Source: Selaginella moellendorffii (taxonomy: Eukaryota; Plantae; Lycopodiophyta). Taken from it: a DNA stretch of 64,000 bases. The translations under genes and the position numbers were made by a program. The notes under the pieces are model-generated. The model was not told the origin of the DNA. It did not search any database and saw nothing but the letters and a program-made list of their open reading frames with translations. The stretch's first letter is position 1, and every line of letters starts with the position of its first letter. Shown piece after piece: positions 6,371 through 35,556 of this stretch. The stretch spans positions 124,001-188,000 of the forward strand of contig NW_003314377.1 of assembly GCF_000143415.4 (NCBI RefSeq), read 5' to 3'.

Positions 6371-6614
6371 AGAATCGAACCTGAAACGTTTGTTTTGGGA
6401 GACCGATGTCCTAAATGACTGGTCTAAGCTGTTTTTGTGAGCTGGCGAACCAGAATAATGGCTCCTTATTTAGCAAAATTTTTGCATAAAAGTCCTTGTT
6501 GAGTGGACCCTTCGGCATCGAACCCGGGTCTTCTACAACGGTTTACCTCTACACTTACCTGATAGCCATCATCTCAGCAACCGGGTTCCCGTAATAAAAA
6601 AATCATACCATGTA
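6371..6614 (-). repeat. dispersed ~245-bp repeat with tRNA-like boxes, copy A
   Basis: Highly similar to 19992-20234 and 21119-21361. The minus strand carries GGGTTCGATGCC and GGTTCGATTCT B-box-like motifs. Confidence 0.8.
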
Positions 6615-6749
6615 CTTGAACCATATGACAGGGGTCTTTGCGAAATCCATGGCGTTTTTGTTAGATCGCCCACCAGACGAGATTATCCCCCGCATTCGTG
6701 CTGCTCGGCGTTTCGTCCTTGGCAAAGCCCCTCTTGGGTTGTGAATCGA

Positions 6750-8121
6750 TCATCGTGGTAATGGATCGTCAAGAGTTATGGCCTGGGTTGCAATAGAAAC
6801 TCGCAGAGCAATCTCCACAGCCGCAGGAGCTTTGCGATCTTCTGCTGGTGTGAATCTCATCAGCCCCAAAACTCCACGTTTCAGCAATCCGACGAAACCT
6901 GTAGCGTGTGGCCATACAAACGAACATACCTCGGTATCATCCTCGGCTGCCTCGATGCCTGGAGAGTAACAGTCCCGGGAAGAACCATCATTTGCCCGAA
7001 ACGAAATGACGATGGATCCCCTTGCATTCCCGCTGCCAGCCAAGGACCAGCTTGTGTAGAACTGAGCCCGAGCCGGAGACCAATCCACCGGGGCTGTCCA
7101 AGTGATGCCGAGATCAAGCTCGCTGTGTGTGCCAGAAAAAGAGAGCCTGAAGAGGACGCGAGCACCCGACTTGGAGCAGGGCTGAGACTGAAAACACGAC
7201 TGTCCGCGAAGTTGATGCCTGTTTCTTCGCTGAGATCTCCAGCCAAGTGCTTCGCCAAGCTCTTCTCCAGCTCCAGATAGACACTACTTGTAGTTGCAAG
7301 CGGGCACTTGCCTACCAGCTTTGAGCCAAACATGCTAGAGAGTGTCCAGTCTTGCAGCTTTCGGAAAACAACCTGCTCCAATGTCGTGCCTTCTTCGTCC
7401 CGATCGAAGTCACCGGAAGTGATAAGCAGCCTCTGGGAATGGTACATACCACTGTAAATCGTCTGCCTGTCCAAGAGCGTCGTGAGCCCAGCCTTGTCTC
7501 TACATGGGAGAAGCGTGAGCCATGGCGTGAGCCGTGGCGTTCTACAGAGTGCTTCTCTTGGGAGTGCTCCATACCTCGTCATCGAGCTCTTGCTCCATTT
7601 CTTTCCTTTCACCACCCTCTTCATGCCAGGAGCGTCGAAAGCTCCTCCTCCTCCTGTCCGGTTTGCCTCGGGCCTCGACGAGAACCACGGCCCCAAGAAC
7701 GTAGTTGGCAATTCGAGGAAGTTGATCGATGCGCAAAAGAGGACCGAGAGAGCGTGCGTGAGGTTTCCCCACGTCGAATCCACCTCTGCCTCTGGAAATG
7801 CCGTGAGCTCCACTCCCACTGGCTTGGCGGCGAGCTGCGCGATCGGATCGCCCACGCCCCAGCGCTCGTTGTTCCATCGCCCTTGCCATTTCTTTGATTC
7901 GAAACTTCCAGACCTGTTCCAAGCGATTCTTTCATCATCGTTTCGGGATTTGAGGACTTACGAGCTGGAAGATCGACAAAAGAAAGGGCAAAAGGAGGAT
8001 AGGGTTCGATTTTACCTCTCCACTGAGAAACGTACTTGGAGTAAGAGTTCGCACCTTTGGAAGCACTCTTCTGAAGGCCATGGGTATTTGCACTGTGCTG
8101 GGAGATTCTCTCCAAGGGCAA
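6750..8121 (-). pseudogene. PIG-T: GPI transamidase subunit PIG-T/Gpi16 pseudogene
   Basis: Motifs VDSTWGNLTHALSVLFCASINFLE, RYGALPREA, LTPWLTLLPCRDKAGL, YHSQRL and YGHTLQV. The conserved VCTEN is scrambled, there are frameshifts and internal deletions, and the C-terminus is missing. Confidence 0.8.
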
Positions 8122-8139
8122 GTAAATCTGTGCTTGAAT

Positions 8140-8790
8140 TCTTTCTAGTAGTTATGGCACTAGCATTTTACTGAGTTTATATGTATGGAAAGTGTGGGCT
8201 CATTGAGATGCATTTGATTGAGCGGGATGAAACACGACGATCACTGTCTACGTGTCGCATGAGTGTGGTAAGCAAGCAATCCACCTCTATGCATACTTAT
8301 GTCTAGAAGGGACAAAATGAGTTGATGTTTTGCCAATGCTTGCTCAATGTTGCATGACCATTTGTTTGGTTGCAATTTTGTCTCTACCCAGATTGTTCTT
8401 ATTAGTTGAGCAATAGTCTTGAAGTGCAATTATGTTTTAGTGGAGTTTTGAGCCTTGGACGATTGTCATTTAGCACATATACTTGGCATGGAAAGTTGCA
8501 ATATACATTTCTGATAGAGCAAAATGCAGGCCTAAGATAAAAAAAAGATCACCTTCTCATGGCTTTAGATGCTTGTTTTTCTCTTGAAGTTCTTTGAACT
8601 GATAATCACATTTATAAGTTGTAGTTGGTTATGGGTTGGATTTTTCTCTTTAAGTGGAAAATTTATGGAAAATGCAGGGATGCATACAATGTGTTTGACA
8701 GCATGTGCTATAAAATAAACGTGATCATTTGAATTGCCATGGTTACTGGACATGCTCAATGTGAACATTATTTACAGCAAGGTGAAGGAA
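8140..8790 (+). pseudogene. heavily decayed PLS-class PPR gene remnant
   Basis: Stop-interrupted motifs VYMYGKCG (~8175), ANACS (~8332) and YGKCRDAYNVFDSM...VII*IAMVTGHAQ (~8664-8760). Confidence 0.55.
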
Positions 8791-9234
8791 AAAAAAGGAA
8801 TGAATTGCATAGTCTATGCAAAATTTTCATAATGAATTGATTCAAGTCTTTTAACCACAAAAGAGATCAGGAATGCCCTTAGTGAAGTTGGGAATTTTGC
8901 TTACCATTCTCATATATTTAAAACCAAAGAGCCCATTAGCAAGTAAGTCTTGAATTTTCTCACAATGCCCTAACATTGAATGCAATGTGATTTTAGCCCT
9001 CTTAACACACATATTTTTTCTGTTTTTGCAAAGTGGTTCTATTTCTTTTTCTATATGGGGTAATTTATCTTTTAACTATTGGGCAGGAATATTGCACACT
9101 ATTGTGGCTTTGACATTTTAATATGTTAGGATGTATTATAAAAATTTATTAAATTTAGCATTAAATAGAACAAATAACAATTCTTATTGTACCACCCTCT
9201 AGAGACTAGGTAGTTGTAAGTAATCAAAGATAAC

Positions 9235-9320
9235 AGAATTACACTATATATTGAGAATTACATGATAGAGAATTACACTATATGTTGAGAATTACATGAT
9301 AGAGAATTACATTACATGTT
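9235..9320 (+). repeat. tandem repeat, ~34-bp unit x2.5
   Basis: AGAATTACACTATATRTTGAGAATTACATGATAG is repeated. Confidence 0.8.
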
Positions 9321-9379
9321 AAAATTGACATTTAGTAAATTTAATTTGCCTTTAATTAAGTTCAACATAAATGGTAGGG

Positions 9380-9650
9380 TGTCAAAAGAGCAAGGCTCTT
9401 GGGAAAGTTGTGGATTTTAACTTCCATTTACGAGCATGAACTTGTAAGAAAGTATAATAAATTATAAGTAACTAAAAAGAACGAATTGAGAGAAAATCTA
9501 TAAAGGTCAAATATAGAGGGAAATAACAAAAGTACACCCTTTTTTTTGGGATACTTAGGGGGTTAAAACATCTTAGATTTGAGTATTGGGATATTTAAGG
9601 GTTAAATCTCCTTAGGTTTGAGTAATATTGGGCTAGGTGACCTCTAAAAA
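9380..9650 (+). mobile_element. decayed fragment of the TRIM family found intact at 13531-14225 (internal end, PPT and LTR)
   Basis: Degenerate match to the reverse complement of ~13560-13810 (e.g. ttaacttcc...gagcatgaacttgta...aaaaagaacga...gggctaggtgacctc). A second LTR piece lies at ~10103-10162. Confidence 0.6.
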
Positions 9651-12565
9651 AATCTAAATTTAGGAATGGTATATTTCTCACTCATCTATATAGCATGATT
9701 TTAAATTTAGTTCTCTTAAATATATTGAGCATAACAATTTTAGATCTGATTCTCTAAATACATTAACCATGACACAATTGAGAAATGAGACTATGGTTAT
9801 TTCCTCCTACTACATTAGCATAAAATTGTTTTTCTTTTTATAAAGCTTTATGATTTTTTTTCAATTTATCAATACTTTAGATTTTAGATGTGATTCTGAG
9901 GATAAGGAGAAAGCCATCCTTTGAGGGAGGACAAAAAGTTGGCAGGTCTTTATATTAAATATCTATAAATCCATTTAGTAAATTCTTATGAAATATGATT
10001 GTCTAACATCCTTTTTATTTATAATTTCTAATATATGAGAGACATTGTAATTTGAATTTCTATAATAAATCCACTAAAAACTATTAGTGAAATATAACTT
10101 TATATAAACTCCTGAGTTTGGAGTTTCTAAGAGATCACCCAACTCAATATTATTCAAACCCATAGATATTGTCGCGAATGTGACTTCAGGTATCGAAAGT
10201 TACCTGTCAGCCAATCCTTATGGACACTCTTTCCTTATTGCCATGACGGCAGGAGGTCGGTATTGTTGGACCCTTTATCAACCCCTCTTGTTCAAGTGTT
10301 AGTAAATTAGGCTTTGCATCTATATTTGGCCGGAAGAGCATAAGAACGAAATTCCTAAGTGTCTATTTAGCCAAACATACTTGGTCTGGCTTTTTAGTTC
10401 TCTTTTGCTTTTTCTTGCACTGGCTTGACAAGAACCCTCATGTATTGAGACTAGTCCTTCAATATCGTTACATGATAGCTTACTGTGTCTGCCAAACACC
10501 CTCGCTATCATGCCTTTTGTGTTAGTTTCAATTCGGTTCTAAATGCTATTTATGGAAAGTTGCTCATTTGGCATATCTACGGAATGTAGAGATTGGCTTG
10601 AACACAATGGTGTTCGTCCCGTATCCAAATTCGCATTCTAGCGCTATTTCATATTTAGTAAATTTCAAATTTGTCCCAGAGACTAACTCTTGATACTAAG
10701 GGAGGTTTGGGGTGAAAGCCCAAAGCGTGTGTTCCTCAAGGGGGGGGGCTGTGGGGGGTTCCAAATGTATAGTAAGGATAGTGGGTAGGTCGGGCATGGC
10801 TGACTAGCGTAAGGCATAGTTTAACTCCCGCTTGCGTGCCTGTTTTTGTTCTGCGTCCGGCTTGGGTCTAAGCCCAAGTTCCATTCCATGCTAGCTAGTG
10901 GAGTACCCATATCTTCACGTTAGGCCACCAGTATGCTGAAATAACACCAAACTCTGTTTGGCTCCGTTTTGTATGTAGGTCCTAACATTGGGATGTTAGT
11001 TGCTCTAAGACTATCTAAGTCACTCTATGCTCCTGTCCCTTCGCTCCTTGGGCTGTATGCTCAGGAGTTGCTTTGTGGTCCGGTTCCATCACTCCTTGGC
11101 TCCATGTTTGGGGGTTTGGCATCGTTCCTTTGTTTAGTGGCCCAAGACCCTAAAACTCGGGTTTCACACCACTGTCCTTTGGACACGTGGCATGTGACAT
11201 ATGGCATCTGTCACATGGCACAAAGAGGGTTTAGGTTCCGCTTCGTGGTGTTATCCTATGGTAAATCACCACAGGATAAAGGGTAAAAACCACATGCACT
11301 ACATTTGGTATCAGAGGATGAGTCTCAACGAGTACTATCTAATGAGATTAGGCAACTAGTCTCATTGCATATGCAGAGATGAAAACGATGATTTGAGTGG
11401 GTACACGTTTTGGTGCGAAGGCTTCGCAAATGGTTCTTTGGGTATGGATTTGGTTACCTTTTTGAACTGCATTGTATGAGCTTGCTCTTGGGCTCATAAG
11501 ATGGATTGAGACGTTCCATTTACACGAGTTTTCGCTTGGGCTCATGAGTGAGGCACATTAACAACTCAAAGTTACATTTTGAGTTGGCAGGATTAATGTT
11601 AGCTTATTGGTGGTTCCATGAGTTGTTCCATGTACCGTGGGTGAAAGTAAACCTTCCCTAGGTTTGCTATGAGTGGCAAATAGGCTAGTCCATAGTTGTT
11701 TAGCATGGCACTAGTGGATACTTAGGCATGATTATGAGTGGATCAATCAAGACTGTAGGGATTGGTTTATTGGTTCAAATAATCATTGCCATGCTCTCTT
11801 ATAAATTTTTCTTGGATTGCACTGAAGGCAGTGCGAAAGCAAGTTTAAGGTTTAGTCAAAGATGAGACCGAAAAGAGAGTCGTCAGGGATGAGGGATCAA
11901 ACACGTAAATCATTTTCTTTTCTTGGAGGGATGATTTGCAATTTAGTGTGACTCATTGCTTGTGTTCACAGTATGCAATCAAGAGTCCCTATCTTGATGT
12001 ATGTTAGAAGTGATGGTCTTACAAGTGGTGAGTTATGGGATGGATAGTGGTGAAACGCTAAACCATTTTGTCTAGGCTTGCTATTGGAAGACTTGGGTTG
12101 CAATGCTCAATTCTTTTCTGGGGAACCTTGCTAATGCTCCTTGAGTAGCTTGGTATTAGATTAGTTTTGAGTTTGGTCAGAAAGAGAGTGACATGAGCTT
12201 GTCTGTGTTGTGAACAAAAGTTAGTGGTGTTGGGTATTGTAAATCTCTATTGGTGGAGTGTGACATTTATATTGCATCTTGTCGAATTGAGTTAACACTT
12301 GATACTCACATAAACCTTTGTCATAGTAACATGGGCATTGCTCATAGTGTTGCTTGATTAATGATTAAGACATTGTGATACTTATATCATATTCATGTGA
12401 TAATGAGCAATGTGTTTACGAAATTGCTTGGTTAGACAATGATCAACCCCAAAGTGGTTGATGGTGAAGCTAGTCTACTTGCACGAAGTAGCGTTGTAGT
12501 AGCTTTGATTGGATTCTCAATGGTGGTCCATTATGCTAAACTTAAGTTGGTATGTTGTTTCCTTG

Positions 12566-14225: not shown

Positions 14226-15277
14226 CTTTGAAGTTAAGGCAATTGAGTTGGATAAAGTCTAGAGTTGGTGTGGAAAAGTGGTTGTTACACTTTTCTAAGA
14301 AAGTTGATCCTTATGCCTTTCTTCTGTAGTGTTATGCTCGATGGCAGGTTGCACCTTGCATTTTATTAAACTCTATGAGAGTAGTGAGCTCTCACTGATC
14401 TTGACTTAGTCTTGGTGGTCCTATGCCTTGGCTGAGGATAGTGATGTCCAACTTACTTATTTGAAGTTGAGATGTTGGTACCTATACTATAACTTTGTCT
14501 ATGAGGAGGTTGTGTACCAATATGAGTCCATCTCATGGTCTACACTTTAGTTTTGACTAAGTGTTGATCATGCCTAGCTAGCCTCTTCAAGGCATGCTCA
14601 GGGCTGTTGGCTAAATACATTAGTGAGCTTATTGCGGTTGAGTTGGATTTGAATGGTCATTTAGTTTGTGCTTATCTATGAACTTTTATTTCGTATCTGG
14701 GGTATCATATTCATGTTAAGATAAGTATATAACTTGATGACAAAAGTTGGTGTTTGGGTTTTGTGAAAGCAAGTTGAGGAGTGATTGTTAGTTGCTTTGT
14801 GACTAATGATTACTTGTAAACTTTGTTAAGGACTATTGACACTTGCTTTGCTCAATGATGATTTAGCAGTGATGGGCTTGTTTTACCGGATGGTGTTGTG
14901 GAGGATTGTGTCATTAGACTTACATGGTTTGTTCCATGTTGGCATATCGATTCTACCTCTATCAATATCATTTTATTGCGTTTAGTTCGTAGTGTTAGAT
15001 TTTATTGAGTCTTGGACGTGGTAAATCACTCCTTGATGATGTGTTATTTATAGTTGAGTATTGTTGAAAGAATTAGTCTCCGATACTAACTAAAATATCT
15101 TTGATTTTGGTTAGCTTGGTTGCTAAAGAGTTTTGAGTGGTGATTCACTCTTGCTTTCTTTTAGTTTGTTCTGCTGTTTAATAGCATTGAAGTGGTGCCT
15201 TGTCGTTAACATTATTAATGTTGAGATTTGAGTGAAATGAAATGTCTCTCATGAAACAGTACTAAGAAACCCTGTAG

Positions 15278-15466
15278 AAACTCCAGGCGGACGAAGATCT
15301 CTACATGAGGATGAAGTTCTTCATCAAAGACTTGTCAAGCTTCGAAAGTGACGAAGAAGCTCAGGAAAGGCTCGAGCACTCTGGCAAGTCACAGTATTTC
15401 TTCACGACGGCATGCGAGGAAGAAATCACGAGGATATACTGCGTCACGAGAATTATCCTAGGATAA
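15278..15466 (+). pseudogene. truncated paralogue remnant of the orphan ORF at 19590-19958
   Basis: DLYMRMKFFIKDLSSFESDEEAQERLEHSGKSQYFFTTA aligns with DLETRCRILVHDLLNFES-EEAQARLCFDPAARFFLSRA. There are in-frame stops upstream and similarity is lost after ~40 codons. Confidence 0.6.
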
Positions 15467-16177
15467 ATCTCGCAAAACCTGTGGATAATTCTCCGGACCC
15501 AGTATTACCTAGATAAAAAGAGAGAGCAGGATGACGAAAGTGTAACAAAGAAAAAAGGAACAAACGAAATTTTAAAGTACTGAAACTGACCTCCAATGCA
15601 GATAGTACCTAAGCTTTGGACAGCGATCCCGTCGTTTCAGCCGCTGTCGTGCTGCTGCTTTGATGAGTCCTTCGAAAATGTATGCCTTGTTCGTCGAGAA
15701 AGCTCAAGCTACAGAAGAAGAAAGAATGAAACGAACGAGTGTTAATGCAGCAAAAACAAAATATCGCTTTTGTCCTATCGCACACAAACCACTCACAATT
15801 GTTGCGATGGTTCGTCCTGTGAGAGATAGAGCACAGTGCGCAAGTTGAGGCGCTCTAGAAAAGGAAAATTGAGCTGATGAACAACACCTGATCCTGCGAG
15901 ATCGTACTCCACCATGCCATAGTTGAGAGGAGCTCATGTCACTCACGGAGGAGACACTGGAGAGAGGCTTTCAGCACTCGAGAACACGGCTACGGATCAT
16001 CGCCTGCAAATCTGAGCGGCAAGACGAACGAGAAATGAACAGGAGAAGATGAAGAGGGAAACAAATAAGAGAAAAGAAGTGAAGTAGTGGATATTCCAAG
16101 GATATGCGAAGATACGCTTAATCTCACGCCCTCATCGCGTGGCGATTCTGTTCGCCATCGCACATCTGGTCTGTTCA

Positions 16178-17072
16178 GTTCATCCATAGCTTGAGCACTC
16201 GATCCTTTCCCCGATGCGACTTTTTGGCCGTCAGGGCTCCAATCCACGGCAAAAACCTGCACAGGAATGTTTTGCTCGTAAGCATCCCTTGCGGCTTTGA
16301 AGAGGTACCTCGTCGGCATGACCCGGAAGATCCTCCAGAAGTTTATGGTTTCTCATGTTCCACACCTGTTTCCCAAATGGTGAGGATATGAGAGTGAAAA
16401 AAGAATGCCAACCTTCAACGTAGAATCCTTGCTTCCACTTAGTAAAGTCGGCTATCAGCTGACCAACTGATTCACCTCGTTCAAAACGAAACCACCACAG
16501 AAGAAGATCGACAAGGAAGACGAAAAACAAAGAGAGACCTTATCTGATAAACCGGACCAACATGTCTGCGGAACGTGGTGACGTACTCCATTCCAAAGCT
16601 TGACGGACTTATCAAAGGATGCACTGGCAATCCACCGGCCATCAGGCGAGAAGTAGACGTGATTGACAAGCTGAAAACATGGAGCAGCATTACAAGCAGG
16701 ACGCCAATGATGAGAACGTTACCTGTTGATGGCCAGACATACGCGTCTTTGGATGCTTGCCAGTTGCAGGGTCCCATAGGTACATTGACGAGCCTTTCTT
16801 GGGAATCACCTTTGGCGGCTTTGTATCTTCTAAACGCGGCCTACGACACCACCGTGAGAAACAGATGGAAGAGAGTCACAGTAAGTGTTACCTCTTTGAT
16901 CTCTTCGTCTGTTGCAAAAGTTCTTCCTGTGTGATCGAATGGTCCAGTCCTTAGAACATACTCCGTGCTTAATGCTAATGTGTTAACCCAGTGAGCATGA
17001 CAGTGTCAATGTCACAGTAAGAGATCACAAGCAGGGCATCCCTCCAGCTTAAGCACCTCGCGCGGTGTGTAC

Positions 17073-17112
<40 letters not shown>

Positions 17113-17618
17113 GTACTAGGAATTCCTCGTAGGCTGAATGACACAGACAAAATATGGCCTGATAGTTCAACTAAGTTTGATTCGAAAACGAAATAACACT
17201 TCGCACCTGAGATGGTCGCTGAGCAACGCGTAACCGGACGGATCCGGAAGATCGCTTGCGGGTGGTAAACTATCTGCAGATCCTTCTCCACAGATACTGA
17301 ATCCCAAAAGAAAATGGAGCGTTGCTTCATGAAACTATTTCGATTCTAGATAGAGAGCACCTTTGTTTCGAAGTACGTGTTCTCCGAGCTGTCCAACGAG
17401 CTCGAGATCGTTAATATAAAAGGCGTATGGGAGCGGCTCTTCCCATACAAACGAAAAAGAATAAGAATTACACGAAGGAAGCGAAAGAAAGAAAGAATGC
17501 GTCGCTCACATTGTGAAGAACAGTGTTGATGAGCGTCTGGAGCTCCTTCTGCGTGAGATTCTGCGGCACATCCAAGCGCTCCAGCATTCACGAAGACGCA
17601 GATGATGTTATCCTCCAT
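16178..17618 (-). pseudogene. NLE1: Notchless (NLE1) WD40 ribosome-biogenesis gene, intron-containing but disrupted
   Basis: Motifs VSVEKDLQIVYHPQAIFRIRPVTRCSATISG, HWVNTLALSTEYVLRTGPFDHTG, HVGPVYQI and DLPGHADEV-FAVDWSPDGQKVASG. Frameshifts are present and the middle WD repeats are missing. Confidence 0.8.
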
Positions 17619-17862
17619 CGGAGAACCCTAAATCTCTACTAAAAATTTTAGCTTGTTGGAACGAGGAAGAAGACGATCGCAATGCGGCGCTCGGCGGAAG
17701 CGATCCTCCTTCTTGGAGGATCATCCATCGATTCTGTGGCAGCGCCGCTTCCATCAGATGGATTGATCGATCGGCGATTGCTTACTTATCAGGTAAAGAA
17801 ATTCCAAAATCTCCTCGTTTTATTTTTCCCTTCCATCTTGGCTAAGGTGCGTGTGAGCGGCG

Positions 17863-19370
17863 ATGGCGCTCTCTCTCCAATTCCCGGTCTCCACGCCCCG
17901 GCAAGCGTCGCTGGAGATTTCAAAGCTAACGCCCGGCTGCCTTGCGTCGTCCTTCTCCTTGCGATCTCCTTCCACTTCTTCGCTCCATTCTCTCGGCACA
18001 AGCAGCGGCATTGCCACGGCCGTGAAGAAGAGCTCGAGAAGATGGAGAGCGGCGAAGACGGTGGCGATGGCGGCAGCCGCTAACGAGGTGTCGAATCGCA
18101 AGGTACTGATTGTCAACACCAATTCCGGTGGACACGCCGTGATTGGCTTCTGGCTCGCCAAAGATCTCGTCGCTGCTGGCCACGAAGTTACTGTCATGAC
18201 TGTCGGTGAGGAGAGCTCGGATAAGATGAAGAAGCCACCATTCTCGCGGTTCTCGGTATGTTCTTGACCATGTCTTCTGTATATTCGTGCTTCCTCTTCC
18301 GTTTATTCTTTGCAGGAACTGCGAGATCTTGGAGTATCAACCGTGTGGGGCGATCCGAAAGACGTTGGAGCAGCCGTGGGTGGCAAATCGTTCCATGCCG
18401 TTTTGGACAACAATGGAAAAGATTTGGATGCTGTGAAGTATGCGATCATCTTTCTCGTCTTAGAGGATGAAGTTGGCTGGTTTTTTTGCAGGCCTGTTGT
18501 GGACTGGGCGAAATCCCAAGGTGTGGAGCAATTCTTGTTCATCAGTAGCGCAGGAATCTACAAAACTAGTGACGAGCCTCCGCACGTCGAAGGGGTAAGC
18601 AACCTCCACTTTCTCTCTTTTCTTTCTCGCTTCTCAGCTCAAGCGAATTGCTGCAAACAGGATCCTGTGAAAGTGGACGCAGGCCACGTCGGTGTGGAGG
18701 ACTACATTTCAAAGTCGGCTTTCAAGTTTTGGTCCTCGTTTAGACCCCAGTACATGACTGGCTCCGGGAACAACAAGGACTGCGAGGAATGGTTTTTCGA
18801 CAGTAAGCTTTTCCTTCTTCTGTTCGTGTTTCAAGGGATCATGAAAACGTTTTGGACAGGAATTGTTAGAGACAAGCCCGTCCCGATACCTTCTCCGGGG
18901 ATCCAAGTGACAAACATTGCTCATGTATCCGACTTATCGAGCATGATAACACTGGCGATTGGGAAACCGAGCGCGTCCAACGCTACCATCTTCAATGCTG
19001 TGAGCGACCACGCTGTTACTTTCGATGGTCTCGTCCGGTTGTGCGCCAGAGCTGCGGCGAAAGAAGCGAAGATCGTCCACTACGACGCCAAAGCTCTGGG
19101 AATCGATGCGAGGAAGGCATTTCCTTTCCGAAACATGGTATGCCCAACCTTTGATTATTTTGGTTTTCATATTTTCCTTTCGTTGTTTGCGCTGCTGTAT
19201 AGCATTTCTACGCGGAACCAAGAGCAGCAAAGGAGAAGCTCGGGTGGACGAGCTCGACAAATCTCTCAGAAGCATTGAAGGAGAGGTACGAGGAGTACAT
19301 CAAAATTGGGAGAGACAAGAAGGATATCAAGTTTGAGATCGATGATACCATTCTGAGCAAAGTCGGATAA
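17863..19370 (+). CDS. CSP41a: chloroplast stem-loop RNA-binding protein 41 kDa a (NAD-dependent epimerase fold), multi-exon
   Basis: Ser-rich transit peptide; [57 protein letters not shown]|HFYAEPR; GT-AG introns. Confidence 0.95.
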
Positions 19371-19550
19371 ACATTGCTTTGCCAAATGAGGTTCTTCCAT
19401 ACGACGTGGTCAGTAGTATCCCGTCTCAGAGAACCAGTAATGTCACTTTCAGATCGAAGGATGTTTGAGCTTCTCTGAGTTTTTTTTCCTGCTTGCTTCA
19501 TCGCTTACTTAAAGGTCTAAACTACAAATGAAGAATGAGGTTAACATTGG

Positions 19551-19560
19551 CTATATAAAT
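19551..19560 (+). promoter_or_regulatory. TATA box of the orphan ORF
   Basis: CTATATAAAT about 38 bp upstream of the ATG at 19590. Confidence 0.6.
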
Positions 19561-19589
19561 ACGGGGACAATTAGGGCTCGTGAAGCTTG

Positions 19590-19958
19590 ATGGATCTCGA
19601 GACCAGATGTAGGATTTTAGTACACGATCTTCTCAACTTCGAGAGCGAGGAGGCGCAGGCGAGGCTTTGTTTCGATCCAGCTGCGCGATTTTTCCTCTCT
19701 CGGGCTTATTTATCCCCAGAGGAGGTGGACAAACTCAGCAAGACGCAAACTAGCGAGGGCAAAACTTTGGGCGAGGCGCTGGAGGAGGTTTTGGAGCGGA
19801 AGAAGGGCAAGGGGGACTACCAGCTGTGCACGTCACACGACATCGCGCCCATCTTGCAACAGGCGCTCGGCATCCACAGGGATTTCCAAAAGAATCCAGC
19901 GTTTAAGAAGGCCTTGAAGGCATTCAACAAGGAATGGAAGAAGAGAAAACCTTTGTAA
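19590..19958 (+). CDS. intronless 122-aa orphan protein of unknown function
   Basis: Clean ORF with GC3-rich codons, a canonical TATA box and a diverged paralogue remnant at ~15290. No plant domain recognised. Confidence 0.75.
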   Translation: MDLETRCRILVHDLLNFESEEAQARLCFDPAARFFLSRAYLSPEEVDKLSKTQTSEGKTLGEALEEVLERKKGKGDYQLCTSHDIAPILQQALGIHRDFQKNPAFKKALKAFNKEWKKRKPL

Positions 19959-19991
19959 GAACTCCTTTGTAAAAATTACAAGTAATCGACC

Positions 19992-20576
19992 AGAATCGAA
20001 CCCGAAACGTATGCTTTGCGAAACCGATGTCCTAACTGGCTGGTCAAAGTTGTTTTAGTGAGCTAGCGAACCAGAACAAGGGCTACTTAAAGAGCATGAT
20101 TTTGCATAAAAGTCCTTGTTGATTGGACCCTTCGGCATCGAACCCGGGTCTTCTACACCGGTTTACCTCTACACTTACCTGATAGCCATCATCTCAGCAA
20201 CCGGGTTCCAGTATTAAAAAAATCATACCATGTACTTGAACCATATGACATGGGTCTTTGCGAAATCCATGGCGTTTTTGTTAGATCGCCCACCAGACGA
20301 GATTATCCCCCCGCATTCGTGCTGCTCGGCGTTTCGTCCTTGGCAAAGCCCCATCTTGGGTTGTGGAATTAGAAGGACTGGAAGAATCGATCATCGTGGT
20401 AATGGATAGTCAAGAGTTATGGCCTGGGTTGCAATAGAAACTCGCAGAGCAATCTCCACAGCCGCAGGAGCTTTGCGATCTTCTGCTGGTGTGAATCTCA
20501 TCAGTCCCAAAACTCCACGTTTTGGCAATCCAACGAAACCTGTAGCGTGTGGCCATACAAACGAACATACCTCGGT
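19992..20576 (-). repeat. tRNA-like repeat copy B plus duplicated 3' PIG-T fragment (duplicate of 6371-6935)
   Basis: Near-identical to 6371-6935, with an extra ~19 bp near 20366. Confidence 0.88.
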
Positions 20577-20754
20577 GTGATCACTCACTCGAAAATCTCT
20601 GCTTTTACGAGTGGAGTGAATCATCTTCCGAGCGTGTGGTTCTCCATGGGATAAGGCTGCTACTTTCTGTTTTTTCAGTAAGTATTTTTCTGTTTGCTAC
20701 TACTTGTTTGGTAATTTGGTTTGCAAGCTTAAGCTCTTGAAACTGATGAAATCT

Positions 20755-20859
20755 GGCACCAGGGGTGCTTGCCCTGAAAAGAGTCTTTCTTCTGAAAGGG
20801 TAGGCTGAGATGAGACCCTCACGACCTGATCAGGATAATTCCTGCGAAGGGAGTGTGCC
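20755..20859 (+). ncRNA. TPP (thiamine pyrophosphate) riboswitch aptamer, plant type, inside a putative intron 20678-20886
   Basis: GGCACCAGGGGTGCTTG-[P3]-AGGCTGAGA...ACCCT...ACCTGATCAGGATAATTCCTGCGAAGGGAGTGTGCC. Stems: P1 GGCAC/GTGCC, P2 AGGG/CCCT, P3 CTTGCCCT/AGGGTAGG, P5 CAGG/CCTG. CTGAGA and GCG ligand-binding motifs are intact. Donor GTAAGT at 20678; pyrimidine tract and TGCAG acceptor at 20886. Confidence 0.95.
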
Positions 20860-20953
20860 GACGCTGTATTTTATTTTTCTGTGCAGGTTTTATGACGATC
20901 GCACAGAATCAAGCTTGTGCACTGTATCTCAGATATCCAACTTGAAGTGACTC

Positions 20954-21037
20954 TATCGAGGATGATAATGGGAAAACTGAGCGCGTCCAACTTCAATGGT
21001 GTGAGCGACCACCCAAAGCAGGCATTTCCTTCCCGAA
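20954..21037 (+). pseudogene. patchwork fragment of the neighbouring CSP41a exon
   Basis: Matches 18935-19011, 19088-19094 and 19115-19132 with the intervening sequence deleted. Confidence 0.8.
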
Positions 21038-21118
21038 TTTAAATTGAATTATTCTGTGTTTTGACTTTTAGAGCAAAGAATATTGTTTCCTTTATTCTAT
21101 TTTAAGTTAGTATTGGCA

Positions 21119-21361
21119 AGAATCGAACCGGAAACGTATGCTTTGAGAAACCGAGGTCCTAACTGACTGGTCTAAGTTGTTTTAGTGAGCTAGCGAACCA
21201 GAATAATGGCTCCTTATTTAGCAAAATTTTTGCATAAAAGTCCTTGTTGAGTGGACCCTTCGGCATCGAACCCGGGTCTTGTACAACGGTTTACCTTTAC
21301 ACTTACCTGATAGCCATCATCTCAGCAACCGGGTTCCAATAAAGAAATATCATACCATGTA
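21119..21361 (-). repeat. tRNA-like repeat copy C
   Basis: Near-identical to 6371-6614. Confidence 0.85.
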
Positions 21362-21726
21362 GTTAAACAAGTACTGGACGAGATTGGGATCTAGATGGAT
21401 CGATCACGCTCGATCGCCTCGCCTCTTCTGCTTGCACCGGGAACAAGATCCACCGCGTAGCGAGCAGCCTCAACCGATCCATCGCGATTCAAGATGGAGA
21501 AACCTCAAGGCGGTCTAAATGCTTGGCCCCTCTCGGCAGACCCACAAATTTTCATCCAGCGACAGAAATAAGGGCCACAACATTTTCTAACCCCCAGCTC
21601 CATTTGCTTGAGAAATCGTCGCCTCTTCTTGAGTTTGCTCGCACATTTTTTTGGAATTGAGAACGAGGAGAAGAAACAATCCTCAATGCTTGAGATATAT
21701 TTTTCTTCTCTGGGTTGTGGTGTTTG

Positions 21727-23547
21727 ATGCGTGCTTATGCCACTGATTTAAGCTTGGATTTTCCAAAGTGCGCCGCTCTCTTGCGCCAGTGCACCGGACT
21801 AGCCAGCCTCCGCGAGCTCCACCACAAGATCGCTGCTGCCAATTTGGATGCGCACACGTTTCTGGGCAACCATCTCGTCCAGATGTACGGCAAGTGCGGG
21901 AATACGGCGGAGGCGCTTCTCGCTTTCGAGCGCATACGGAACAAGAATCGCTTCTCGTGGAACATCGTTCTCACGGCATATGCCCAAAACGGGCATATTC
22001 TGGAGTCGAAATTTCTCTTTGAAAAGATGCCGCAGAGAGACCTTTACTCTTGGAACTCGATGATTGCGGCGCTAGCACAAAACGGATGTTTGGAAGACGC
22101 GTTTGCGCTGGCCGAGAAGATGCCCGAGAAAGATACTGTTTCTTGGAACACGATACTTGCGGCATATGCCGATTCAGGAAGCTTGCCTATGCTAAAGACG
22201 ATGTTTGATCGAATGGAGAAGCGCAATGCCGTCTCCTGGAATGCAATTATCTCTGGATATGGCCAAAACAACAGTGTGGAACTCGCAGGAAAATGTTTAG
22301 CAAAAATGCCGCAGAGAAATCTCTTGTCTTGGAATGCCATGCTTGCGGCATATGCCCAAAACGGGTATTTTGCTATGACAGTAAAGCTCTTTGCGGAGTT
22401 GTGCGCCGAGGGATTTGAACCCGACGCGTTTACCTGCGTGAGCGTACTGGACGCCTGCGATCGTTCCTTGGGCGAGGAGATCCACGACGAGGCGCGATTC
22501 AATGGCTGGGATTCCAGCGTCTTCGTTGGCACGGCGCTCGTGGCCATGTACGGGAGGTGCCAAAGTGTGGACCGTGCAAAGGAGGTTTTTGGTTTGATGC
22601 CCGAGCGCAACATTGTGTCATGGAACGCGATGCTTACCGCATATGCCGAGAATGGGCATCTGGAAGATACCATGGCCGCGTATAAGCATATGCCAGCTAG
22701 AGATCTTGCATCTGGAAATGGCCTTGTGTCTGGCTACGCGCGATTAGGGCAGTGGGAGAGCGCCCGTGCAGCATTTTGGGCTCTCCCCGAGCGAGATGTG
22801 GTTTCTTGGAACACGATGATCGCGGCGTGTGTCGAGAGGGATCGTCCGCAAGAATCGCTCGCGCTCTTCCGGGAGATGGATCTCGATGGCGTCGCGCCAA
22901 ACCGGATCACGCTTGCGAGCATCTTGAGCGCCTGCGATGGAAGCCAGGAAAATATCGCGCATGCGCTCATCGCCGGGCTGCGGGATCTCGAGCCGGACGC
23001 GATGATCGGCACTGCGCTGGTGATCCTGTATGGCCGGTGCGGCAGCTGCGAGAAATCCTTGGAAATCTTCCACCAGATGGAGGAGCCGCGCGATCCAGGC
23101 GCTTGGAATTCGATCATCGCGGCGCTGGCACGCAATGGCCACACCGATGCGGCGATCGCGATGCTGCGGCGGCTGGAATGCGAGGGGATCGAGCCGGATT
23201 TCGCCGTTTTCAACAGCATTCTCTTTGCATGCAGCCATGGCGGATCTCTCCGCGAGGGCTACGCACATTTCTTGATCATGGGTGGGGATTACGGCATCGC
23301 GGCCAGCGCCAGCCATTTCATGTGCCTGATCGATCTGCTGGGCCGCGCCGGGAAGCTGGAAGCCGCGGAGGAGCTGATCGATTCGATGCCATTCGAGGCG
23401 GATGGCCTGGCCTGGACGATTCTCCTCAGCTCTTGCAAGAGCCACAACGATGTGGAGAGAGGGGCCATGGCGGCGATGAGAGTGGCCGAGTTCGAATCCT
23501 GGCAAAGCTCCACTTATGTGATGCTCAGTAGCATCATGAGGAATTAG
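21727..23547 (+). CDS. PLS-class pentatricopeptide repeat protein with C-terminal E domain (organellar RNA editing type), intronless
   Basis: Repeated SWNAM/MPERN/MYGKCG motifs. Ends HFMCLIDLLGRAGKL...MPFE...WTILLSSCKSH...YVMLS, with no DYW domain. Confidence 0.93.
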   Translation: MRAYATDLSLDFPKCAALLRQCTGLASLRELHHKIAAANLDAHTFLGNHLVQMYGKCGNTAEALLAFERIRNKNRFSWNIVLTAYAQNGHILESKFLFEKMPQRDLYSWNSMIAALAQNGCLEDAFALAEKMPEKDTVSWNTILAAYADSGSLPMLKTMFDRMEKRNAVSWNAIISGYGQNNSVELAGKCLAKMPQRNLLSWNAMLAAYAQNGYFAMTVKLFAELCAEGFEPDAFTCVSVLDACDRSLGEEIHDEARFNGWDSSVFVGTALVAMYGRCQSVDRAKEVFGLMPERNIVSWNAMLTAYAENGHLEDTMAAYKHMPARDLASGNGLVSGYARLGQWESARAAFWALPERDVVSWNTMIAACVERDRPQESLALFREMDLDGVAPNRITLASILSACDGSQENIAHALIAGLRDLEPDAMIGTALVILYGRCGSCEKSLEIFHQMEEPRDPGAWNSIIAALARNGHTDAAIAMLRRLECEGIEPDFAVFNSILFACSHGGSLREGYAHFLIMGGDYGIAASASHFMCLIDLLGRAGKLEAAEELIDSMPFEADGLAWTILLSSCKSHNDVERGAMAAMRVAEFESWQSSTYVMLSSIMRN

Positions 23548-23581
23548 CTAGGGTTCTTGGATTGGCCCTAGGCCACAGTGA

Positions 23582-25710
23582 ATGGCGGACTGGGGAGACG
23601 ACAACGTCCAAGAAGGGGAGGAAGAGGATGGATCGGAGGATTTCGAGCTCCCGGAGGAGGAAGAAGGCGCTGGATCGCAGCAGAATCACGGCAGTGACGA
23701 GGAGAGGAGCAGCAGCAGTGGCAACGAGGAAGGGAGCAGCAGCGGTGAGGAGAATCAAGGCGATGGCGATGATCCGGTGGAGATTCAGGATGATCTTTTC
23801 GGCCCCGATAACGAAGATTATATGCGCACTACTCCGCAGAGCCAGCTTCCCATACCAAGTAAGAGCGATTGTTCTTCTTCTCCCTTTTTATTTTTGTTGG
23901 TCACACACATTTTTTGTGTAGTCCTTCCCGAGCCCCGGAATGACCAAAGGAATGATCACGAGTACCGGCGAGGAAATCCTCGTGGAGAAAGAAATTCATC
24001 CTTCTACTCTGGCGGTTTCAAGTCGAAGGATCTCGTTGCTGACCTGAAGCTTGGCCCTCCTGGCCACTTGGACGAGACCTTGCGCATTGCATGCCCCCCT
24101 TTTCAAGAGGTAATCGTCAGGTTTGTGGTTCATTTTTTCTCCACTTACGTAGGCCTTGATTAACAGTGGAGAAATTTGGCTTGCATGGTGGTTCTTTGGA
24201 GCAGCCAAATCAGATTTGCTGTTACAGTCGAACACCGGATGGAACCGTTTACTATGACGAAAGGTGTCTGGTGAGTGCGGTGCTTTTGCGAGTGGTTCTC
24301 TAAATAATTGAGTTTTCTTTCCTTTTTTATTCCCCTTGTCGACAGAGAAAATTCAGGAGGAGAGTTCTCTCAAGTTTTGAGGCCGACTTAAACGAGGGGT
24401 TTGACTCTTTTGTTCAGAAGAATGATGGTTGGTGATCTGTGATTTTGCGTGGTTGAGTTTCTTTCTGATTCGCGAGCATTGCAGATTCGGAATCCAGTGC
24501 TTTCGGCGACTTGCTGGCGTGTGTGCGAACAAAATTGACTTCTTTCAAAGACATTCATTTTGTAGTAAGTTTTCACAAATCTTTACAAATTACCATCACC
24601 CATCGTTTTGTTGGCGCAGACATTTCGGAACAACTTAAATAAGATACTGGGGACGACCTATAGTAGACGCGACGCCTGGGAGATGGGCGTGCACAAACGT
24701 TCTGGAACAGTGTATTTGGATTGTCGTAAAACTCCTGATCCTCCCCAGACTGAGCTTCAACAACGACAGTAATCACAGCGCTTCTTCCTCCACTTTTTAC
24801 TTACGAAAAACTGGTTGTTGCAGATGTTATTGGGGCTACAAGTATGAGGAGGTTGCGACTGAAAATCCTCAACGAGATCTCTACGAGATGTCGGGCGACG
24901 CAGGGCCGCCTGTCGCTGTGGATGCGAACGTTGAGTTTTGCACAGTCGTTAGAACCAAACTTGGTCCCCATCGGATCATTATGGGTGCAGAGATCGACTG
25001 CTATGACGTCGGCTCCGACGGTACGAAGCGTTACACTGAGTTAAAGACCAGTCGCGAGGTGAGTGCTTGTTTTTATGTTCTCTTCGACGTTTAGGTGTTA
25101 TGCTCGCTTGCAGTTGGACAAGAGAAGTTTTGAAAGATTCGAGAAAGAGAAGCTTTTGAAATTTTGGGTGAGAGTCACTTTCTTGGATATAATTTTCTCT
25201 GCCTAACTTGCTTACCATCGCAGATACAATCGTTTTTGGTTGGAGTTCCACGAATTGTATGCGGCTTCAGGTAATGTTGTTTCTTCCCCTCTTCGGGCAG
25301 AGAAATGAATATCTTGATCTGGTCATGAAAAACAGGGACGACAATGGTAGGCTTTTGCGCTCTGACATGATGCTCACTCAAGAAATTGCACGTAAGATGA
25401 AACAAAAGCATTACTGGGAGGTAAGGCATCTACGTTTTCAGCGATTCAAGTCAGCAATGGTTGTGACAGGGAGGTGTGTGCCTGGCATTTGCGGATAGAG
25501 TCCTCTGCTGGCTCTATGGCAGCGTAAACGATGGTAACGACAGAGATCTCTTTCTCTCATTTTGGATTTCACTGAGCTCCAAAACTTGGTGCAGGAGGAG
25601 ATTATACTCTTCGTTACATTCCCAATAGCAACAGGATTGAGCTAGTGAACTGTGATTCCTGTCCAAGAGTTATCAGCGAGCACATTGAGCTCCTGGAATC
25701 CTCGAGCTAG
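23582..25710 (+). CDS. DXO1: DXO/Rai1 family decapping exoribonuclease (NAD-cap deNADding), multi-exon
   Basis: Acidic N-terminal extension; [54 protein letters not shown]|IQSFLVGVP. Confidence 0.92.
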
Positions 25711-35484: not shown

Positions 35485-35556
35485 TATCAGAGACAGGTTT
35501 CGATCCTGTGACCTGTGGGTTATGGGCCCACCACGCTTCCGCTGCGCCACTCTGAT
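35485..35556 (-). tRNA. initiator tRNA-Met (CAT)
   Basis: ATCAGAGTGGCGCAGCGGAAGCGTGGTGGGCCCATAACCCACAGGTCACAGGATCGAAACCTGTCTCTGATA. A1-T72 pair, ATCG in the T-loop, upstream CAA motifs and a downstream T-run terminator. Confidence 0.98.

Follow-up and report, generated by a model that had tools for sequence, protein, structure and literature searches.

An intergenic stretch of the Selaginella moellendorffii genome carries a complete TPP riboswitch aptamer together with its splice signals. The site is most likely a non-functional duplicate, made fairly recently at the DNA level, of a riboswitch module in the 3' UTR of a gene under thiamine control, hereafter the donor. The locus itself is a DNA-level patchwork of gene scraps and not a gene. 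The analysed sequence, a stretch of 64,000 nucleotides referred to in full as the window, lies on scaffold GL377681.1 (GCA_000143415.2), and its portion 11727-33547 is denoted L001. Transcript evidence comes from contigs of four public runs (X1, X4, X5 and X6) aligned to window 17600-23500, of which X4, X5 and X6 probably represent RNA (contigs of X4 and X6 omit the introns of the neighbouring CSP41a-like gene at GT..AG, and CSP41a is uncovered in X5). The remaining run, X1, dates from 2020; it likewise lacks CSP41a coverage and hence is probably not mRNA. The main features of the riboswitch module are as follows, where the allele is the copy of the locus in a second assembled haplotype.

20678-20683, + strand: 5' splice site GTAAGT (GTAAGC in the allele); in one X6 contig the joint begins after 20677.
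20751-20870, + strand: TPP aptamer, recognized by Rfam model RF00059 at 59.5 bits and by its minimum-free-energy fold.
20760-20762, + strand: proximal acceptor CAG, placed where P1 meets P2 and used in donor-type RNA.
20845, + strand: C of the 'GCG' J5/4 loop, replaced by A in the second haplotype.
20882-20886, + strand: distal acceptor TGCAG, read from the sequence; a joint to 20887 occurs in none of the four runs.

The aptamer matches the full length of the Rfam covariance model RF00059 (positions 1-105 of 105) and exceeds the gathering score of 54.3, with E = 3.9e-9 when the 64-kb window is searched and 1.3e-10 when the local 2.2 kb is searched. It contains the CUGAGA and ACCUGAUCAGGAUAAUUCCUGCG motifs and the P1 strands GGCAC/GUGCC, and the alignment shows P2/P3 with a long P3 insert and a P4/P5 arm of sequence ACCUGAUCAGGAUAAUUCCUGCGAAGG. 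The three-way junction is satisfied, comprising P1, the pyrimidine-sensor arm P2/P3 (CUGAGA) and the pyrophosphate-sensor arm P4/P5 (ACCUGAUC...GCG), and an energy-only fold of the 120 nt agrees with the three-way junction from cmscan (-42.5 kcal/mol, z = -2.3). The P3a hairpin of the RF00059 model is missing, as is usual for eukaryotic TPP aptamers. When the whole intron was folded, no additional structure reached significance (z = -0.5), and the 5' splice site was not clearly paired with the aptamer. Together, the aptamer and splice signals are far above chance, and the complete TPP aptamer that the initial annotation placed between GTAAGT and TGCAG is borne out by both the covariance model and the fold. 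The sole other Rfam match within the 64-kb window is a tRNA-Met at 35485-35556.

The public annotation places zero genes between the CSP41a-like gene (17863-19370) and a PPR gene (21727-23547), which flank the site. Genes called nearby encode Gpi16/PIG-T, a WD40 fragment, RAI1, GH79, TLC, an RraA-like protein and a GMC oxidoreductase, and larger ORFs elsewhere in the window match Mur ligase, malectin and adaptin (Pfam). A Pfam scan found no Thi4 or ThiC domain among the called genes and larger ORFs of the window, in agreement with the original statement that neither THIC nor THI1 is present. The aptamer is thus not carried in the 3' UTR of a thiamine-biosynthesis transcript, and what stands upstream of it is an antisense PIG-T fragment. 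The WD40 model beside CSP41a (window 15458-16785; L001 3732-5059, - strand) is 127 aa long, compared with 474 aa (NLE/WD40) for the copy in a third related region (L003, described below), and the window copy may be truncated or mis-modelled.

The origin of the module is revealed by very deep RNA contigs that match the window only in one short span, here called fragment B.

20577-20991, + strand: fragment B, a copy of the donor 3' UTR with the riboswitch, the only place where the very deep RNA contigs match.
20578-20580, + strand: donor stop codon TGA, which in donor RNA follows ...GCC GAA GAC GAC GAG ACC ACC GCC ACG GCG.

The deep contigs are confined to 20573/20592-20919, and in part extend to 20991, with depths of 1733 (X4) and 1253 (X6), compared with 26-78 for CSP41a contigs in X4. 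Upstream of 20573 they continue for hundreds of letters unlike the window (...CATCGGCCGAAGACGACGAGACCACCGCCACGGCGTGATCACTCGCTCGA), and the donor coding sequence ends in frame with the TGA at 20578-80 as ...AEDDETTATA-stop. Past 20991 the donor RNA again leaves the window (loose end GCTACCATCTTC). Since the match is limited to this span, with unlike sequence on both sides, 20577-20991 is a duplicate of ~415 bp from a highly expressed gene elsewhere. The copy begins 1-5 nt ahead of the donor stop codon and ends abruptly at 20991; it has the properties of a gene-fragment duplicate, being near-identical to part of a functional gene and having ends (20573-77 and 20991) that ignore gene structure. 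An origin of fragment B as a retrocopy was considered and rejected, as no A-run follows 20991 and the donor RNA runs past that point.

Divergence from the donor was measured against the RNA contigs. Fragment B is ~98.5% identical to donor transcripts, with about 5 differences in ~415 nt (mismatches at 20576, 20587, 20602, 20878 and 20923), and more variable positions are present past 20919. Near-identity to a THIC/THI1 UTR had been named at the outset as the mark of a recent passive duplicate, and this is what the donor RNA displays. The compensatory differences from the donor UTR that were also proposed as a check are absent, since the aptamer contains 0 mismatches between donor and copy.

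The identity of the donor is less firm, with THI1 tentatively and only somewhat favoured over THIC. The lean towards THI1 is based on the depth of donor RNA, 14-66x that of the CSP41a contigs in X4, and on its short Ala/Thr/acidic C-terminal tail, which we take to resemble the C-termini of THI1 proteins. For non-seed plants, TPP riboswitches are reported both in THIC and in the 3' UTR of THI1 (PMC11521341).

In donor RNA, the form that retains the 3' UTR intron dominates. A single spliced contig was found (X6, depth 469, 29-nt side), joining 20677 to 20763 with GT..AG boundaries, and no contig in the four runs uses the TGCAG ending at 20886. The junction 20677/20887 predicted from the sequence was therefore not seen, and 20677>20763 is the only one present in the RNA contigs. 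The acceptor CAG of the spliced contig sits exactly at the aptamer P1/P2 boundary. Judging from this one contig, P1 formation in the donor could mask the 3' splice site rather than the 5' one. Plant TPP riboswitches are known to work through a choice of retaining or splicing an intron. In the donor, TPP-dependent intron retention versus splicing would alter the 3' UTR and hence the fate of the mRNA, and TPP-induced closure of P1 could shift the choice of splice site, the acceptor being embedded at P1/P2.

Upstream of fragment B the window contains a second gene scrap, fragment A, derived from the 3' end of a PIG-T gene, and copies of a ~250-bp repeat lie on both sides of the riboswitch.

6371-6941, - strand: PIG-T 3' end (part of the last coding exon plus 3' UTR), the source-like copy of fragment A (blastn).
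19992-20576, - strand: fragment A, the duplicated PIG-T 3' end, cut at 20576 (blastn and contigs).
20573-20577, strand not applicable: left junction A/B with microhomology CGG(T), PIG-T reading ...CCTCGGT/ATC and donor RNA ...GCCACGGCGTGATC.
19992-20241, - strand: ~250-bp repeat inside fragment A, with two GGTTCGAT motifs.
20992-21118, strand not applicable: spacer unique to the locus, uncovered by X4, X5 and X6.
21119-21368, - strand: second local copy of the 250-bp repeat.

Window 19992-20582 aligns to 6371-6941 with 91% identity over 592 bp (blastn), and ORFs at 6750-7855 match Pfam PF04113 (Gpi16) with E = 4e-35. True PIG-T RNA and DNA contigs continue beyond 20576 as ATCATCCTCGG..., equivalent to window 6936 onward. 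The PIG-T copy reads ...CCTCGGT/ATCATCCTCGGCTGCC..., and the same loose end is found on contigs that leave the window after 20576. At the switch between 20576 and 20577, PIG-T (...CCTCGGT) and the donor (...CCACGGCGTGA) have 3-4 nt of microhomology in common. The initial annotation's description of a riboswitch-plus-intron module, relocated with its aptamer intact among decayed gene fragments, is supported.

An X4 RNA contig on the PIG-T fragment (20409-20576) has one mismatch and then continues as true PIG-T (ATCATCCTCGCC). From this it follows that a PIG-T allele or paralogue closer to the fragment than the window's copy at 6.4 kb must exist, from which fragment A was probably derived. The 250-bp repeat is present in three window copies (6371-6621, 19992-20241 and 21119-21368) with 90-92% identity. 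Its GGTTCGAT motifs resemble a tRNA B-box and the repeat is possibly SINE-like; searches with ARAGORN and Rfam (E <= 1) returned no tRNA or SINE match for it. Variant letters in RNA contigs at 21144-21192 point to further copies of the repeat that are expressed elsewhere.

A second copy of the locus (L002, GL377682.1:152629-173486) was reached via a 90% cluster member of the PPR protein, and aligns colinearly along 6.4 kb of the window (17654-24000) with 94.4% identity. It bears the same mosaic with letter-identical junctions, which excludes an assembly chimera, the artefact that had been raised against the site at the outset, and which places the formation of the mosaic before the divergence of the two scaffolds. 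The L002 aptamer (8079-8198) scores 54.6 bits, barely over the gathering score of 54.3. Its only difference from the window aptamer is C20845A. The change falls within P4/P5, in the internal loop 'GCG', which in the thiM/THIC structures of Serganov, Thore and Edwards (all 2006) reportedly contacts the pyrophosphate through Mg2+. When the L002 aptamer is folded, this A and the facing U form an extra U-A pair that closes the loop. The donor splice site of L002 is GTAAGC instead of GTAAGT, and L002 carries a 10-bp deletion ahead of this site, a 12-bp deletion directly after the distal acceptor and a 9-bp deletion further along.

A third copy (L003, GL377682.1:124850-146199) was compared with window 15483-19975. 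Scaffold GL377682.1 contains two WD40/CSP41a-like/ORF blocks ~25 kb apart, each ~94% identical to the window, and only the second of them runs into the riboswitch mosaic and the PPR gene. The homology of L003 stops at window 19975, just short of the mosaic. The region resembles a segmental duplication hotspot, or one that is partly mis-assembled. The gene model EFJ07655.1 (344 aa, L003 10001-11350) overlaps two duplicated pieces, one 93.7% identical to window 15250-15433 and the other an inverted piece of CSP41a (window 18938-19147) with 78% identity, and its ends may be annotation artefacts over another fragment mosaic.

The two haplotypes allow the constraint on the copy to be assessed. The alleles differ at 1 of 120 aptamer positions, compared with 11 of 262 positions, plus 5 indels, in the remainder of fragment B; the single aptamer change is not significantly low, about 3-5 being expected (P about 0.2, Poisson estimate). 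With the donor RNA as outgroup, private substitutions in 20592-20919 number about 8 in L002 and 1 in the window copy. The PIG-T fragment, with 12 private changes in L002 and 6 in the window, shows the same direction, and because of this the L002 excess looks like a lineage effect and not like riboswitch protection.

Transcripts of the copy were sought through the letters that distinguish it from the donor. At 20602, 20878 and 20923 the donor letter accounts for 100% of the depth in the covering RNA contigs (X4, X5 and X6), and none of these three runs has an RNA contig on the unique right flank at 20992-21118; Logan contigs drop rare variants, and weak expression of the copy would hide under the ~50-80x deeper donor. 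An X1 contig spans 20603-21222 with zero differences and crosses the right junction, in the run taken above to be probably not mRNA. It had been proposed that the relocated module may have come to regulate another gene, or may serve by itself as a TPP-binding RNA. This proposal is not supported by the data, in which no RNA contig carries the copy's letters or its right flank and the allele has a mutated loop.

A candidate for a new host is an ORF located 720 nt upstream of the riboswitch module on the same strand.

19590-19958, + strand: 122-aa ORF, a C-terminal-domain-only family member with the motif LCTSHDxAP (phmmer).

The initial annotation regarded this ORF as an orphan, and a word-indexed search did return zero homologues; this reflects a sensitivity limit, as exhaustive phmmer gave 201 matches, the best with E = 4e-21 and 46% identity. 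The ORF aligns either to the C-terminal ~115 residues of proteins of 300-395 aa or to whole proteins of 120-160 aa, with the motif LCTSHDxAPxxQ. Members of this LCTSHD family occur in chytrids, Blastocladiomycota and Glomeromycota and include S. moellendorffii EFJ07655.1, often with several per genome. The distribution is patchy, covering fungi and a lycophyte. No Pfam family was found for the homologues, and ESM Atlas gave no usable match for the PIG-T ORF or the 122-aa ORF. Both the window and L002 (6932-7300) keep the ORF open, and the two versions are separated by 5 synonymous and 4 non-synonymous substitutions, without any indel. The copy in L003 is frameshifted by a 19-bp deletion, and LCTSHD-family positions on L003 are 9055-9383 and 10535-10876. 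An unstranded window-type RNA contig (X4, 19843-20179) extends across the end of the ORF to fragment A, which shows that there is some transcription in the vicinity. The 5' half of the ORF has depth 0 over 19570-19766 in all four runs, and a TATA-like box upstream of the ORF is deleted in L002.

The sequence of events that best accounts for these data can be outlined as follows. The donor, probably THI1 and possibly THIC, resides elsewhere in the S. moellendorffii genome. A 415-bp piece, from just before the donor stop codon to an arbitrary point in the 3' UTR, would have been joined through microhomology to a duplicated PIG-T 3' end, in a rearrangement-prone intergenic stretch reaching from the CSP41a-like gene to the PPR gene. 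The mosaic predates the split of the two assembled haplotypes and has drifted since. The window haplotype keeps the donor aptamer letter for letter, and the other has lost a pyrophosphate-contact nucleotide, with several indels alongside. A copy with neither host coding sequence nor detected transcript is most likely inert and decaying.

Some observations run against a mere relic. The window aptamer is intact, scores above the Rfam threshold and retains its splice signals, an ORF with a conserved domain (19590-19958) is present upstream on the same strand and open in both mosaic haplotypes, and a window-type RNA contig (19843-20179) maps nearby. These same observations would suit a co-option, in which the 122-aa ORF is a real gene outside thiamine synthesis whose 3' UTR extends via the antisense PIG-T fragment into the riboswitch intron. 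Its family is conserved, with 201 matches reaching 4e-21, and the ORF is free of indels in both mosaic haplotypes next to non-coding sequence with many indels, while the L003 copy, which is without the mosaic, is frameshifted; moreover, the X4 contig links the ORF to fragment A, and the aptamer and GTAAGT are intact in the window. We nevertheless regard this co-option as unlikely, because in four runs no contig covers the ORF 5' half (19570-19766), and no contig joins 20179 to the riboswitch or shows the copy's letters or right flank. The allele also combines a mutated ligand-contact loop with the weaker GTAAGC, indels beside both splice sites and loss of the TATA-like box, and there is no gene model at the site. 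Use of the riboswitch by the ORF, if true, would be the first case in a land plant of a TPP riboswitch on a gene other than THIC or THI1, and would represent a recruitment in progress, with one haplotype carrying a working aptamer and the other a natural ligand-contact mutant. The recruiting gene would then be a member of the LCTSHD family, otherwise found mainly in early-diverging fungi.

The juxtaposition of unrelated gene fragments and the direct 250-bp repeats at 19992-20241 and 21119-21368 bring to mind the interior of a fragment-capturing transposon of the Helitron or Pack-MULE type, which could spread copies of the riboswitch. Such an origin as mobile-element cargo appears improbable, as a search around the mosaic turned up neither terminal inverted repeats nor other element ends, and the left repeat is continuous with the PIG-T duplicate just as in PIG-T itself, and thus arrived with the fragment. 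In addition, the second copy that was retrieved is colinear over 6.4 kb, a pattern that fits an allele and not transposition. A chimeric read join between the riboswitch gene and PIG-T would likewise produce abrupt homology breaks beside repeated sequence, as seen at both flanks of fragment B, but an assembly artefact is barely credible when two scaffolds that differ by 3-5% have exactly the same two junctions, and when the 2020-run contig covers 20603-21222 without a difference and across the right junction.

As a passively duplicated 3' UTR fragment, the site carries little biological weight, and adds one more copy to a riboswitch class that is already known. When plant genomes are scanned automatically for riboswitches, such detached copies will be called new targets, and a check for truncated UTR duplicates should come first. 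The locus also documents the intact copying of an entire eukaryotic riboswitch-intron module to a new site, providing raw material for the kind of recruitment seen in fungi and algae. In addition, the two haplotypes offer a natural pair of aptamers, one canonical and one with C>A in the pyrophosphate loop, for a binding test.

The model of the TPP riboswitch in the 3' UTR of Arabidopsis THIC was reportedly established in 2007 by Wachter et al. and Bocobza et al. The Selaginella module is similar in belonging to RF00059, in its eukaryotic form without P3a, in its CACCAGGGGUGCUUG...GGGAGUGUGCC frame, in its location in a 3' UTR intron past the stop codon, and in the presence of both retained and spliced forms in donor RNA, but differs in that the copy is detached from its coding sequence and no copy transcript was detected. 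A TPP riboswitch in the THI1 3' UTR of non-seed plants is also said to have been described by Bocobza et al. in 2007. The extreme RNA depth of the donor and its Ala/Thr/acidic tail fit THI1, although the copy itself holds no THI1 coding sequence. Lycophytes are among the groups reported to keep the THI1 3' UTR riboswitch (PMC11521341).

The copy resembles gene-fragment duplicates, such as pseudogene pieces (processed or unprocessed) and the filler DNA of repaired breaks, in its abrupt ends, junction microhomology, adjacent scraps of other genes and presence in both haplotypes, and also in its neutral-looking decay, with indels and a changed critical nucleotide, but unlike these it contains a complete and canonical metabolite-binding RNA domain. 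TPP riboswitches on non-biosynthetic genes are known from DUR31-type transporters in Candida (PMC5997356) and from marine algae (PMC4260697), and these recruited cases show that the module can gain control over other genes, the kind of event that was proposed at the outset for this site. The fungal and algal examples belong to thiamine-related genes, in whose transcribed UTRs or introns they sit, and show conservation between species; the window copy has neither feature.
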